Assembly: GCF_006345805.1 (NCBI RefSeq)
Contig: NW_021834401.1
Coordinates: forward strand, 1-48,830
Direction: 5' to 3'
Source of the DNA: Octopus sinensis
Taxonomy: Eukaryota
Length of the DNA: 48,830 nucleotides
Part shown: in pieces, positions 12,301 through 41,100 of the stretch
Numbering within the stretch: position 1 is the first letter of the stretch
Layout of the letters: every line of letters starts with the position of its first letter
Program-made: the position numbers and the translations under genes
The notes under the pieces: model-generated
Database searches by the model: none
What the model was told of the DNA's origin: nothing
The model's input: the letters and a program-made list of their open reading frames with translations, nothing else

Positions 12301-15300
12301 TTTGTATGTTTATTTTAAAATTATAAGTATATGAAAGAATGGAGTTGAACGATTAGTTAACAAATATCCTTTATTCTCGACATATGTTTCGAAGGTGCAT
12401 ATTCCTAATTCCGAAGGAATAAGGAGTACATTATGCAGATTTCTCATCAGGAAAATCAAGGAACTTATGTCGACATCAAAATGCACAAAAAACTTTTAAC
12501 TGACCGCTCTCAAGGAGCCCAAGTCGTAGAATGGTTCTCTTCCATTTCTAATAAAAATAGCACTAAATTCATTCAATTCGATATTTCCAATTTCTACCCT
12601 TCGATAAACCACAGCGTGCTCAATAAGGCCCGATGGCACGCACATAACAAGGCAGGGCTGACAAGGTAGGAAATTAATATAATTCTAGCCGCTAGGAAAT
12701 CCTTCGTTCAATTCGATGAGAAGTTATGGGTCCGTAAGGTTACTCCCAACGCGTTCGATGTCCCAATGGGAAGCTCAGATAGCGCCCAGATAGCCGATTT
12801 GGTCGGAATCTATATTCTATATGAATTAGCCGACCAATTCCCGGACATCTGCGGCGGTCTGTATCGAGACGATTGTCCTTTTTTACCTACTGAATGACCC
12901 TAACAGTAGGATACATAAAACTAAAAATAGATTAGTTAGATTTTTCAGCAGGATGGGTATGAGCATAATTTTTGACAACGAACTAAGGCCAATTTCTTAG
13001 ATGTTACCCTAATTTTGCATAAAAATTCTTACTTCCCTTACCATAAGCCGTCTATGATCTCCCTTTACAATTCTGTGAAGCCGTTGCTAAGAATTTTCCT
13101 AGGAATTCTAGATACTACTCCACTATAAATTCGCATAAAGTAAGAATAGCATTCTCAAATACTAAACATCTTTCGCAGATAATAGCTTCCCACAATAATA
13201 AGCTGCTAAGTAGGGTCTCATCACCCATGAGTAGCGACACCGCCCTTACCCATTCCAACGTAACATACAATAATAATAATAATAGAAGTAGTATGGATAT
13301 TAGCAACATTAATAGCAGCATTATCGTTAGCAATAGTAGTAATGATAATAGCATTAGCCAGATTATTAACATTGGTGGTTTTAGTGGTAATAGTACCTGC
13401 ATTCTTTATAACAGTTATATTATTGATGATAACAATCGCAGCATTCCTATAGCCAGGGAATGTGCCGACGATATTACAACTGATAGTAATGATAATAAGA
13501 TGAATAGTATCGTAGCCAAAGCCAGCAACAATTTTTACACCTATCACAACAATAAAAACTCTGTCTTAGTTTCGGAAACCAACTCCAACACATTAAAGTT
13601 CTTATCCAAAAATTCCAAAATTAGGAACACCACTTGCCAATGCAAAACCTCTTCTGGAACCGATGTCTGCGTCTACATTGGCGCAACCTCTTCTAAATTA
13701 GCCCAAAGTATCTCCAACCATTATTCCACTTTCAGAGATAAGAGAAAGCAACACAGCACGGGGCTCAGAAAATTAGCCTGCCGTCTGAAGAACAATAACA
13801 CTACGTTCAAGCTCGAATGGTCCATTTTGTCGGTGTCCTTCCCGTTTGATAAAGGCAGAAAATTTTGTGGCATCTGTAATTCCGAACTTTTTCATATTTT
13901 GTCCGCCAAAGTCCCTTTAATAAATACAATCGTCGAAAGATCCTACAGGTGTTTACACTGGAAAAGACACACCTTTCACTCATATAGATAGTGACTAATA
14001 TAGATAACCCCTCGATTTCCCAAAAAAATTTTTGGTATATTTCACCCCAATAGACAAAAAGATTTTCTTATATTCCCAATTACTACTATCCATTCTTGCG
14101 TTGTCTCTCACCACGCCCGATTCTTTCTCCCTTTCGCTATCTACTTTCCTTTCTCTACAGTAAACATAATCGAACACACAGACACAGACCTCTCACCTCA
14201 CAGCTGTCAGTTTTCTGACATCTACTCATCCACAAACACAATCATGCATTCAGACACACACATACACACATTAAGACAGTTATATAGTCACACACACAGG
14301 CACTCATTCAAAAAATAAATCATTTAAACCCACCATTCTTTTGACCTGCACTTACTATTTGTATGCTTCCCTCCTCCTACTTCGTTTGAACCCTTGAACC
14401 TTTAGAACCCTCTAGATTCTTCTACATTCAGCCACTCTTACGTCAATCCTTATAAAGAGACACTCATTTTCGCCGTGGGCTCCTTGAGAGCGGCCAGCTA
14501 AAAGTTTTTTGTGCATTTTGATGTCGACATAAGTTCCTTGATTTTCCTGATGAGAAATCTGCATAATGTACTCCTTATTCCTTCGGAATTAGGAATATGC
14601 AGCCTTCGAAACATATGTCGAGAATAAAGGATATTTGTTAACTAGTCGTTCAACTCCATTCTTTCATATACTTATAATTTTAAAATATATATATGTGTGT
14701 GTGTGTGTGTATCTGTGTGTGTGTGTAACATATAATAATATAGCACACACACACATACACATGCACACATACACACATGCACAAGCATAGAATATAATTT
14801 CATATGTGCGTGTTTGGAAGCAATCATGAATGCCAAACTTACTGAGTTGGAAAATGGTTCCGAAATCCATCGTCTTTATGTATTGAAAACATACGTATTA
14901 GATATTATTGTTATTTACTTGCCTTATATAGCAAAGGCGTATAGGAGCTATTGCACCATACGATCTGGCATTAATCCTTGCTATTTATACACATTTGGTA
15001 AATGAAATCACTTTTACGATTTAGGAAACTCGCATATTTCAGGTTCTAATAATATCAACGACTATGTACTATTAGTGCCTCTTGAAACGTATTGAAATTA
15101 TAGTAGATTTGAATGCTTATTTTCTCGTTAATTTCTATAGTTAATGTATGGTATGGTAATAAATGTTCACAATGTAAACGAAATTTGTGGATAAGCTTTA
15201 CACTTTCAGCGGTTACAACGAATTTATGAAATGTTTTCCTGCTAGAATCGAAAGTTTCTGCCCTCAAGGCTTCCAGCTGGATCACAGATGTTCCGGCGTA

Positions 15301-38100: not shown

Positions 38101-41100
38101 TTTTCAGGTCTTCCGCCTTGAGTAGAAAAGTTTCTTTTCTACTCAATGCAATGTTAATTGCATTCATACGGCACCATATTTAGAGGAATTACATGTCTCC
38201 TTAATGTGCATTCCCAACAACCAAGAACCAGAGGTTTGGCTTGTTACATCTTTCTTAAATTCCTTAAATTTCCGCTGTTTTCTAGTCTCTGTACTTTGGA
38301 ATACTTAATAAAATATCTCTATATTTAAAGGTAACATTTTCATCGTCTCAAAGTTTCAACTCTTGCTTTTTCTCTGGTTGTATATATAGATATATACATA
38401 TATATTAGTTGATGTATTTAATGAATAGCATATACTTGATGTTCCTAATTACATTATTCGCTTAATTTCCTGTCAATATAATATATATATATATACTTTA
38501 TTTTAAGCAGCAGAAAATTCAACAAAATCTGTTACACTGAGTTTCTCGTTGCCGTTCATCAGAGTAACAGATTTTGTTGAATTTTCGGTATATATATATA
38601 TATATATATATATATATAATATATATATTTAAAAAATGAGAAGTGGAACAAGAGTTGTGATATATAAAAAAGGAAATAAAGAAAATGCTGACGAAATAAT
38701 CTAAGTAATTTAAGTAATTTAATTAGGTGAAAGTTCTTTTTACCGGTTGCGCATTTATTATGCTTATGAGAGATAGATTTCCTTTCTGATAAGAGGAAAA
38801 AAATCTATCAGAAAGGAACTTTATCTCTCTTACGAAAATATATTTCAATAAGCATAACAAATGCGCAACCGGTAATATCACCTAATTAAATTGCATAAAT
38901 TACTTAAATTATTTTGTCAGCTTTTTCTTTATTTCCTTATATATATATATATATATATATATATATATATATATATATATATATATATGTAACACATAAT
39001 GATATAACACACGTACAGGTGCGCACACACGTGCACATTTACACACACACACAGACATATGATAACATTTTATATTATAATATAATATAAACCATATATG
39101 CTTGTCTGCAAGTAATAATGTGTAGGAAATGATTCCGAAACTGGTGGTCGTTATAAATTAATAACACACGTATTAGATATAATTGACATTTACTTGCCTT
39201 ATATATCAAACTCTTTTAGGAGCTATTACACTTTTCGCTTTAGCATTTATCTTTACTGTTTGTACACAGTAGGTAAATTAATTCACTTGTGCGATATAGG
39301 ATATTCACATATTTCAGATGTTTGATCATAGCTACGACTATGTAACATTAGTTCCGCTTGAGACGTATGGAGATTAGTGTTGATGTGAATGCTTACGTTC
39401 TCATTAGATTTTATAGATAAATTATGGAATCGTCTTAAGTGATCATATCGTAAATGAAATTTGAAAGCTTCGCTTTAAATTTTCAGTGGTTACAAAAACT
39501 TTTTGTCATGTTTCACTCGAGAGCTCCAATTGGAATGCCATACCAGCTTCAAGATTAATCACCGTTGCTACGATGTAAGTATCTTATTCTTCTTCCAAAT
39601 ATTTCTTCGATTATGCATAAATTTGAAACTGGTCTTAAACAAAATGAAACATTCGTCTATCAGCGCTCCTTATACATGGCACTGTAGAGAACTCTCTCCA
39701 ACAAAAATGTATATGTATATATAAATTTATATATACATATATATACATTTATATATACATATATACATTTATATATACATATATATATATATGCACAGAC
39801 ATGCAGGAAGCAAATCGACATCCTTAATTTTCAGAATCTTTACTTTTGTACGCAAAACTAACAATTGCAATGTAGTCGATAGATAGGACGACATACTTTA
39901 GTATTTAGTTGACATACTTTTTTCAGTTTTTATTCAGAAACTCTTTTGGCCGTTGAACTGATGATCTTTGGGCTTGTCTCTTGTGGAATTTCTATCCACT
40001 TTTCACGCAGCAATCGAAACAATTCATCTTTAGATTTAGGTTTCCTTTGTGTTTTCGTATAGCTCAATCTAGTATGCTACAGAAATTTTCAATTGGGTTC
40101 ATGTCAGGAGATTGGCTCGGCCAAGGAAGCTTTCCGATCCTATTTTCAGTCACCCATTGATGATACCTTTCCGCTCTGCTTCGTGGAGCCGAATCGTCCA
40201 TTAATAAAAATTCATTTTCCTTTGTGCAATCGTTTGAATAATTCGGAAGTAGCCGTTGCTGAATATTTCAATGTATTTTTCAGTGTTTATGGTTCAAATA
40301 CATTCGACCATCTCAGAACGACCATTGCTGGTGACAGCTCCACATACCATTACAGAGCTACCGCCATGTTTCACAGTTGGTTGGAGTCGTTTTAATAATC
40401 GAATTCTTGATTGGAAAACATCCAGACCCAAACACGTCCACTGTCTGAGAATAATGCAAATCTGGATTCATCTGAGAAAATCAGTCTAACCCAAAATTAA
40501 CTGGATTTCTCTGACATATCCTTAGCCCATTTCATTTCTTTCTTGATATTAATTGTTTGAAGGGGAGGTTTTCTTCTAGATACTCGTCAATAATACTTTA
40601 GCTTATGCAGATATGTAACACACATTCTCTTGGAGTAACTTCTAGGTTTTTTGTACTGTCAGAAGCCTTCGAAAGGGGTTCATTTGCCACAATTGTCTTC
40701 AAACACTGAATCATCCATTCCGAGTGCCTAGATTTGGCCGGGACGAAAATAAGTTGATTCTTCTCTTTGGCTTTTGATTTGCGCTATAAAACTATTAACA
40801 TTCGAAAGAGCATTTTGAAGATTTTCGGCAATTGTTTGCTGGCTAAGACCAGTCTCAAATTGACGAACAATACGAACTCCTTGAAAACCTGGCAGTTCTG
40901 CTGAATGTTTGTGTGTAACATGGTAATTCTTCGGTAATGATTAATATAATGGCGCCTGGGACGAAAAACAAATAGTCACGTTGTCAATTGTACACCGTTG
41001 AAAATATATTAAGACGCTTAGGTCCGAAATTTTGAAAATTAAAGGTGTCTATTTACATCTAGCATGTCTAAACGTATGCGTATTTTTAACCCTAATTAGA

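Follow-up and report, generated by a model that had tools for sequence, protein, structure and literature searches.

Episodic divergence of cysteine-domain exons beyond their introns in an octopus-restricted gene family

An octopus gene family and its described parallels

In the conotoxin superfamilies introns are conserved and the exon for the mature peptide is the most diverse part of the gene, with both non-synonymous and synonymous divergence (Dn and Ds) highest there and the cysteine framework fixed (PMC3862624). Among the three-finger toxins of snake venom, profound differences are confined to exons while introns are >85% similar, and short exon segments have been swapped for unrelated sequence, a process termed accelerated segment switch in exons (ASSET) (PMC2711939). 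Non-synonymous substitution above intron substitution was reported for abalone lysin and sp18 (Metz et al. 1998, as cited in PMC9022041), and the MgCRP-I proteins of Mytilus carry a hypervariable mature peptide on six cysteines (PMC4558851). The stretch analysed here, 48,830 nucleotides (nt) of Octopus sinensis (contig NW_021834401.1, positions 1–48,830 of the forward strand; hereafter the window), is eukaryotic DNA with abundant TA microsatellites, copies of short interspersed elements (SINEs) and fragments of long interspersed elements (LINEs). Reading of the sequence and its splice sites places on the plus strand two tandem four-exon paralogues, genes A and B, together with the start of a third, gene C. 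They belong to an octopus-restricted gene family whose protein has not been described before; the pattern of exons diverging beyond introns, which we report for it here, is itself already known.

Each gene would encode a signal peptide (exon 1), a domain of ~56 residues with six cysteines and a predicted four-helix fold (exons 2 and 3) and a hydrophobic tail (exon 4). Ly6/uPAR genes are built on an analogous overall layout, with a signal-peptide exon, domain exons encoding a small disulfide-rich extracellular domain, and a C-terminal hydrophobic signal of the glycosylphosphatidylinositol (GPI) type. Their domains hold 8–10 cysteines in a beta three-finger fold, whereas the octopus domain has six cysteines, no CC motif (LU CCxxxxCN) and no match to the Pfam LU domain, and is predicted to be all-alpha. 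Conotoxin genes likewise place signal and mature parts on separate exons, but no sequence or fold relation connects them with the octopus family (no Pfam match). The octopus domain is larger, helical in prediction and followed by an anchor-like hydrophobic tail, unlike a free secreted peptide, and the family is far smaller, some ten or more copies being grouped in a single cluster. The parallel with toxin and immune families that had been drawn from the letters of the window is therefore good as an analogy only, there being no detectable relation to any toxin family.

Snake three-finger toxins and phospholipases A2 differ from the octopus proteins in protein family, phylum and predicted fold, and the octopus excess is both modest (~2-fold) and episodic. 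One possible parallel to segment switching is the remodelled 5' part of gene B exon 2, which we attribute to micro-duplication. Abalone lysin and sp18 resemble the octopus proteins in being molluscan, helical and tandemly duplicated, but there is no homology; lysin is without a disulfide scaffold or anchor, and its ratio of non-synonymous to synonymous divergence (dN/dS) is clearly >1, as against about 1 in the octopus family. MgCRP-I proteins, with which no homology was detected, are short secreted peptides with another cysteine pattern and without a C-terminal hydrophobic tail.

A full HMMER scan of an A+B profile against 1.84 billion representative proteins matched six proteins, five of them convincing and all from Octopus: O. 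bimaculoides LOC128249942, LOC128249941, LOC128249944 and LOC128249931, and O. vulgaris CAI9735849, each annotated as uncharacterized or hypothetical. The profile matched XP_052830541 with E=2.4e-22 and XP_052830539 with E=1.8e-14; LOC128249942 encodes XP_052830540–42, and LOC128249941 encodes XP_052830539. Word-indexed protein searches returned no relatives with B alone or with an 11-sequence alignment of the domain, while a six-sequence alignment did find them. In Pfam, A, B and the five relatives gave no family at E<=10 beyond chance-level matches, and in the Protein Data Bank a profile search of sequences gave no relative and two Foldseek searches no meaningful match. All relatives found come from Octopus.

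The O. bimaculoides and O. vulgaris relatives are true homologues with the same Trp and six-cysteine spacing, and the O. bimaculoides genes also have the same four-exon structure, intron phases and A-B-C order. The window was compared with 110 kb, plus another 24 kb, from chromosome CM046618.1 of O. bimaculoides. The two are collinear, gene A corresponding to LOC128249942 (A'), gene B to LOC128249941 (B') and gene C to the next gene (C'). Exon limits and intron phases are identical between A and A' and between B and B', and these independent RefSeq models support the exon structure derived here. The O. bimaculoides genes differ by a non-coding distance K of 0.19 and in splicing one or two mini-exons of 27–30 nt, of which the copy in window gene A has decayed and that in gene B carries a stop. 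The O. bimaculoides cluster has at least ten members, on both strands, in about 150 kb. The O. vulgaris locus that we compared is a different part of the family, having in common with the window only repeat copies that are 94–96% identical.

Family alignments give the domain spacing C-x7-C-x13/14-C-x8-C-x8-C-x9-C, with six invariant cysteines, near-invariant Tyr, Phe and His, and in most members a Trp before the first cysteine. AlphaFold2 models of A and B, which are predictions from shallow six-sequence alignments, propose the same four helices and no strands, with a predicted local distance difference test (pLDDT) score of 83–95 over the domain of B. Of the coding parts, the tail from exon 4 is the most conserved (19 of 20 residues between A' and B', dN 0.023). 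Each tail has a short hydrophobic core of 11 residues (Kyte-Doolittle mean 1.9–3.1) that follows Ser/Gly/Ala-rich residues; ahead of the tail, O. bimaculoides proteins have a stalk rich in Ser, Thr and Lys, encoded by one or two mini-exons (27–30 nt). The tail may act as a GPI-type or other membrane-tether signal.

Cysteine-domain exons diverge faster than adjacent non-coding DNA

The span examined, 15210–39574, runs from the first base of gene A exon 3 to the last base of gene B exon 3. A first, sequence-only reading had proposed that the exons of the cysteine domain diverge faster than the non-coding DNA beside them, and this holds for exon 3 of A versus B and repeats in the O. bimaculoides orthologues. 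Each exon was compared with its own flanks within one contiguous block from the Basic Local Alignment Search Tool (BLAST); fixed 200-nt flanks with global alignment were rejected as unreliable where transposons or microsatellites interrupt homology. Between A and B, exon 3 is 56.8% identical and its flanks 75.0% (Fisher p=4e-4), and the exon is the lowest point of its block: none of the 445 non-exon windows of 88 nt is as low, the non-exon minimum being 69.3%. Exon 4 equals its flanks (81.0 versus 81.3%), and exon 2 shows no contrast, with flanks that align too poorly (58.9%).

The counts on which the proposal had been based were largely reproduced. Exon 3 has 50 of 88 nt identical, without gaps, and exon 4 has 51 of 63. 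The 19 identical residues reported for the mature region are correct, although the alignable residues number 56 and not about 57. Length and cysteines had both been called fixed; the six scaffold cysteines are, but length varies, B having one extra codon in the domain (RLTGC versus RKDC) and five before the Trp, which add a seventh cysteine.

The A/B duplication predates the species split, so that the A–A' and B–B' pairs serve as independent replicates. Exon 2 is 79.6% identical between A and A' against 91.1% for its flanks (p=0.008), and 62.1% between B and B' against 83.7% (p=9e-6). Exon 3 is 72.7% identical in both pairs, with flanks at 82.1% in both (p=0.03 for A–A' and p=0.04 for B–B'). 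Three orthologue blocks have flanks long enough for a window test, and in each of them the exon falls below every non-exon window. Pooled over the orthologues, the cysteine-domain exons have 28.3% mismatches and their flanks 16.5% (p=4.8e-7), while orthologue exon 4 has 12.7% versus 16.8%, which is not significant. The original observation extends to both cysteine-domain exons but leaves the tail exon out. Non-coding DNA, the neutral yardstick, differs between the orthologues to a strikingly even extent in all three genes, with 9.7 kb compared (proportion of differences p=0.170–0.171, K=0.19).

Substitution rates were estimated from two species and short exons, with synonymous counts in single or low double digits. 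Over the whole domain, pairwise dN and dS are 0.64 and 0.70 for A–B (dN/dS 0.7–0.9), 0.25 and 0.48 for A–A' (about 0.5) and 0.40 and 0.43 for B–B' (0.9–1.1). In the pooled orthologues the proportions of differing non-synonymous and synonymous sites (pN and pS) are 0.26 and 0.34, as against 0.165 in introns (p=2e-4 and 7e-4, respectively). Polarising the B–B' domain differences reveals where they arose: C' as outgroup assigns 36 of them to B alone and 5 to B' alone (p=8e-7), and A' as outgroup assigns 26 to B and 10 to B' (p=0.011). Introns and flanks put to the same test are symmetric, at 19 versus 10 and 36 versus 35.

Parsimony estimates for the single branches follow the same division. Branch B has pN 0.238, pS 0.194 and dN/dS 1.27, whereas branch B' has 0.019, 0.098 and 0.18; branch A has pN 0.059, pS 0.176 and dN/dS 0.31, and branch A' 0.111, 0.085 and 1.34. 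The pN of branch B exceeds the intron rate specific to that branch, 0.094 (p=6.6e-5). The exon excess is episodic and gene-specific, with the A and B' branches under purifying selection, and the A–B contrast that was first noticed owes much to a burst on the gene B lineage of the window species. Through that burst the scaffold (Trp, six Cys, Tyr, Phe and His; 27 non-synonymous sites) took no change at all on branch B, an outcome with P=6.5e-4 at that pN.

Proposed positive selection and its rivals

On balance we lean towards episodic positive selection acting at the surface of the domain: small helical proteins, secreted or tethered, of a lineage-restricted family would have diversified in this way and by tandem duplication, with some contribution from small indels. 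On this reading the family expands through tandem duplication, and its cysteine-domain exons undergo bursts of amino-acid replacement, episodic and specific to certain lineages, in which the local non-coding substitution rate is outpaced; signal peptide, splice sites, tail and the Cys/Trp/Tyr/Phe/His scaffold are preserved. The most likely driver would be positive (diversifying) selection at the surface of a recognition protein that is secreted or tethered to the membrane, and small duplications and indels within the exons add further change. Positive selection is the best reading of these data and not a proven one. The data show the greater divergence of exons than of introns, its repetition in the orthologues, its confinement to certain branches, the keeping of the scaffold and the lack of recent conversion; the preference for selection over mutation bias, the GPI anchoring and the role in recognition are inferred. 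Selection on the exposed domain, as first put forward, is plausible for particular branches but is not established as a general property (pairwise dN/dS 0.5–1.1, with branch values of 0.31 for A and 0.18 for B').

Several observations weigh against selection on residues as the explanation. Whole-domain pairwise dN/dS, the classical criterion, is not above 1 in A–B, A–A' or B–B', and the branch values of 1.27 and 1.34 are parsimony values on only 2–4 synonymous changes. Synonymous sites also appear faster than introns, which selection on residues only does not predict; even codons that encode the same residue have a pS of ~0.35 (10 differences over about 28 synonymous sites), an excess that is suggestive and not decisive. 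The 32 changes on the B branch are spread evenly over the three codon positions (13/8/11), as they would be without constraint, and gene B has its oddities in a seventh cysteine, a start codon that has moved and a mini-exon that carries a stop.

The apparently elevated synonymous divergence is what exon-biased mutation would produce, whether by local hypermutation, by slippage and micro-duplication or by short ectopic conversion from unsampled diverged paralogues, since such a process raises both classes of site without selection on residues. We consider it unlikely, though it is the main rival. In its favour, pS exceeds intron mismatch (0.353 and 0.330 versus 0.161–0.171, pooled p=7e-4), codons for unchanged residues included; 20 of the 32 B-branch changes are transversions, with codon positions even; gene B exon 2 holds three copies of GTATCCC; and the conotoxin mature exon is likewise raised in Dn and Ds (PMC3862624). 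Yet the excess is specific to branches: on B' pN is 0.019 and pS 0.098, as in its introns, and A is quiet too, unlike what a constitutive property of the exon would give. The synonymous counts are moreover tiny, at 4–11 events per comparison, and the scaffold residues were spared every change, so that selection acts at least there. As to conversion, the nearest relative of B in both exons is its positional orthologue B'; of the paralogues compared from O. bimaculoides and O. vulgaris none is closer, and no ectopic donor for B was found there. A bias towards A-to-G changes, as a trace of RNA editing, was not seen on the B branch (6 of 32). An exon-restricted mutator, acting by hypermutation or templated micro-conversion at ~2x the intron rate on both classes of site and switched on in some gene lineages only, strikes us as distinctly improbable; such a mutator has long been hypothesised for conotoxin genes and, to our knowledge, never demonstrated. 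Loss of constraint on gene B, or its becoming a pseudogene, with plain drift doing the rest, we hold to be quite unlikely as well. It would fit a B–B' dN/dS near 1, the equal changes across codon positions, the odd cysteine number, the start codon displaced by one and the in-frame stop of the mini-exon. But drift cannot beat the neutral rate, and pN on the B branch is 2.5x that of introns (p=6.6e-5). All 102 codons are open, the splice sites are all canonical, and the 10 of 10 scaffold residues (P=6.5e-4) and the predicted fold are retained, for which reason gene B is not simply decaying; drift in B would also leave the exon excess of A–A' unexplained.

The contrast could in principle come from the other side, with ordinary exons set among flanks made unusually similar by constraint or by A–B conversion. 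The 3' block does stand out at ~80% identity between A and B, as against 70–75% in the mid-gene blocks, and its best 64-nt window surrounds the polyadenylation signal. A 3' untranslated stretch with about 5 differences in 64 positions had been singled out beforehand; the stretch is real, but the two coordinate ranges quoted for it were about 10 nt out of register, and the best 64-column window of the block (61/64 at 18284–18347) is its maximum against a median of 51/64, so that the pick was a favourable one. The flanks do not stand out, since introns and intergenic DNA in A, B and C have an equal orthologous divergence (p=0.17) throughout the 9.7 kb. In the 3' block A and B are identical for at most 25 nt in a row, with 23 expected from shuffling, and identity in the 3' region is 81% for A–B, 85% for A–A' and 80% for B–B'. 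A–B identity is thus no higher than that of the orthologues, which argues that no conversion has occurred there since the species split, and recent gene conversion of the 3' region, named in the first reading as a possible refutation, does not explain the contrast. An older exchange, or a younger pre-split coalescence of the 3' segment, is possible. Conversion between paralogues could in any case not reduce divergence between orthologues, and we regard similar flanks as a largely refuted and very improbable account. Least credible of all is chance or misalignment of short exons in AT-rich, repeat-rich DNA. The exons are indeed just 88–121 nt, gapped intron alignments can inflate identity, and the A–B exon 2 flanks show no contrast. 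However, four independent orthologue exon comparisons agree in direction (pooled p=4.8e-7), the B–B' exon 3 block is free of gaps and still gives 72.7 versus 82.1%, and in four blocks, of 94 to 445 non-exon windows each, the exon lies below all of them. At the level of these data an artefact is refuted.

Surface or secreted proteins that evolve fast and are restricted to one lineage are often a sign of molecular arms races or recognition systems, as in venom, immunity, gamete and self recognition or chemosensation, and in cephalopods few such systems have been defined at the gene level. Here a compact tandem cluster, with ten or more members in O. bimaculoides, encodes proteins whose predicted fold matches nothing solved, and gene B has outrun the neutral rate since the two species split while its orthologue B' stayed constant. 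The cluster therefore offers a small and tractable case in which to ask what the family binds, and whether divergence of exons beyond introns reflects selection or mutational bias.

Gene models and surrounding sequence

Features of the gene A–B–C locus (window coordinates)
Feature	Position	Strand	Details
Gene A exon 2	9206..9308	+	103 nt; 33 residues, first half of the cysteine domain; from splice sites and frame; orthologous to O. bimaculoides LOC128249942 exon 2
A/B alignment block with exon 3	14659..15374	+	partner 38925–39656; test bed for exon versus flank
Gene A exon 3	15210..15297	+	88 nt; 29 residues, second half of the cysteine domain
Mini-exon relic, gene A intron 3	15902..15930	+	1-nt deletion; AT in place of the GT donor; from alignment
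A/B 3' alignment block	18082..18767	+	partner 42123–42803; about 80% identical throughout
Gene A exon 4, coding part	18182..18244	+	20 residues and stop; hydrophobic C-terminal tail, possible GPI-attachment signal
Gene A AATAAA polyadenylation signal	18326..18331	+	inside the best-conserved 64 nt of the 3' block
Gene B exon 1	32070..32106	+	signal peptide, 12 residues, phase 1
Gene B exon 2	36669..36789	+	121 nt, versus 103 nt in all relatives
Gene B exon 3	39487..39574	+	88 nt; 29 residues
Mini-exon homologue, gene B intron 3	41823..41853	+	31 nt; AG/GT intact; in-frame TAA after Gly-Lys; from alignment
Gene B exon 4, coding part	42222..42284	+	20 residues and stop
Gene C exon 1	45834..45872	+	13 residues; third tandem paralogue; orthologous to the gene after LOC128249941

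All junctions in A and B are AG/GT, with intron phases 1, 2 and 0. Exon 1 of gene A was not found inside the window by pattern search or sensitive blastn; collinearity, with window positions 3–497 matching O. bimaculoides local 59557–60045, suggests that it lies ~300 nt upstream of the window start. The 102 codons of gene B comprise the signal peptide, the six-cysteine domain, running from Trp to where exon 3 ends, and the hydrophobic tail of 20 residues. The ancestral ATG, which the O. bimaculoides orthologue uses, reads ATT in gene B, and a new ATG stands one codon downstream (window 32064–32075), the signal peptide being one residue shorter than that of the orthologue. Direct search located the GTATCCC copies of exon 2 at 36674, 36688 and 36699; this micro-duplication accounts for the extra 15 nt, the five added codons and the seventh cysteine of the exon, in which Tandem Repeats Finder scored no array. 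Exon 1 of gene C is without the last exon nucleotide that is present in B, A', B' and C' (ATATCT|GTAAGT versus ATATCCG|GTAAGT). It therefore ends in phase 0 and not 1, a frameshift unless compensated; exon 2 of gene C is beyond the window end.

In O. bimaculoides the intron-3 mini-exons are spliced in and encode GKKGYRIIDT, DTKSSSHKDN and ATNNSRNNK (local about 65665–65694, 66912–66941 and 72709–72735), the orthologue of gene A using two of 30 nt. If the homologue in gene B were spliced in, the protein would end without its hydrophobic tail. The block of gene A intron 3 that carries the mini-exon is a tandem duplicate (15511–15944 and 17087–17557); the same duplication is present in A' (local 65417–65952 and 66331–66955), and B has a single copy (41308–41867). 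In exon 4 of B' the usual stop reads CAA and the annotated protein runs 18 residues further (QINKLLQYKFDVLILYFF; merged local 73091–73207), while an alternative last exon gives isoform X2. O. bimaculoides has further members (among them local 34444–34530 and 42127–42222, minus), and one of these lies in opposite orientation within the long intron 1 of the LOC128249942 isoform X1 model.

From A to B the intergenic distance (window 18245–32069) is 13.8 kb, compared to 716 nt in O. bimaculoides. The extra DNA includes LINE fragments, with RVT_1 at 21792–22598 on the minus strand and a PHD-like open reading frame (ORF) at 20915–21520, also on the minus strand, and a repeat at 27435–28144 that matches 3218–3924, inverted, at 87%. 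In gene A intron 2 an inverted repeat of ~240 nt, 95% identical (12305–12541 and 14455–14693), encloses an Asn/Ser-rich ORF of 254 codons (13227–13991) with no Pfam match. The whole unit, 12305–14693, is probably a DNA transposon and has no counterpart in gene B or O. bimaculoides. Gene B intron 3 holds a transposase-like relic on the minus strand (39806–40950), mariner-like by eye only. Its first 450 nt are common to the O. bimaculoides orthologue at 82.5%, and the insertion is hence older than the species split. Rfam gave no match in the window. A SINE-like element is present in two inverted copies (6209–6618 and 8746–9119) with the core cagtcatttgac.gc.g.catgctggagca; one of these copies lies just upstream of gene A exon 2, which is why alignability between A and B is lost there.

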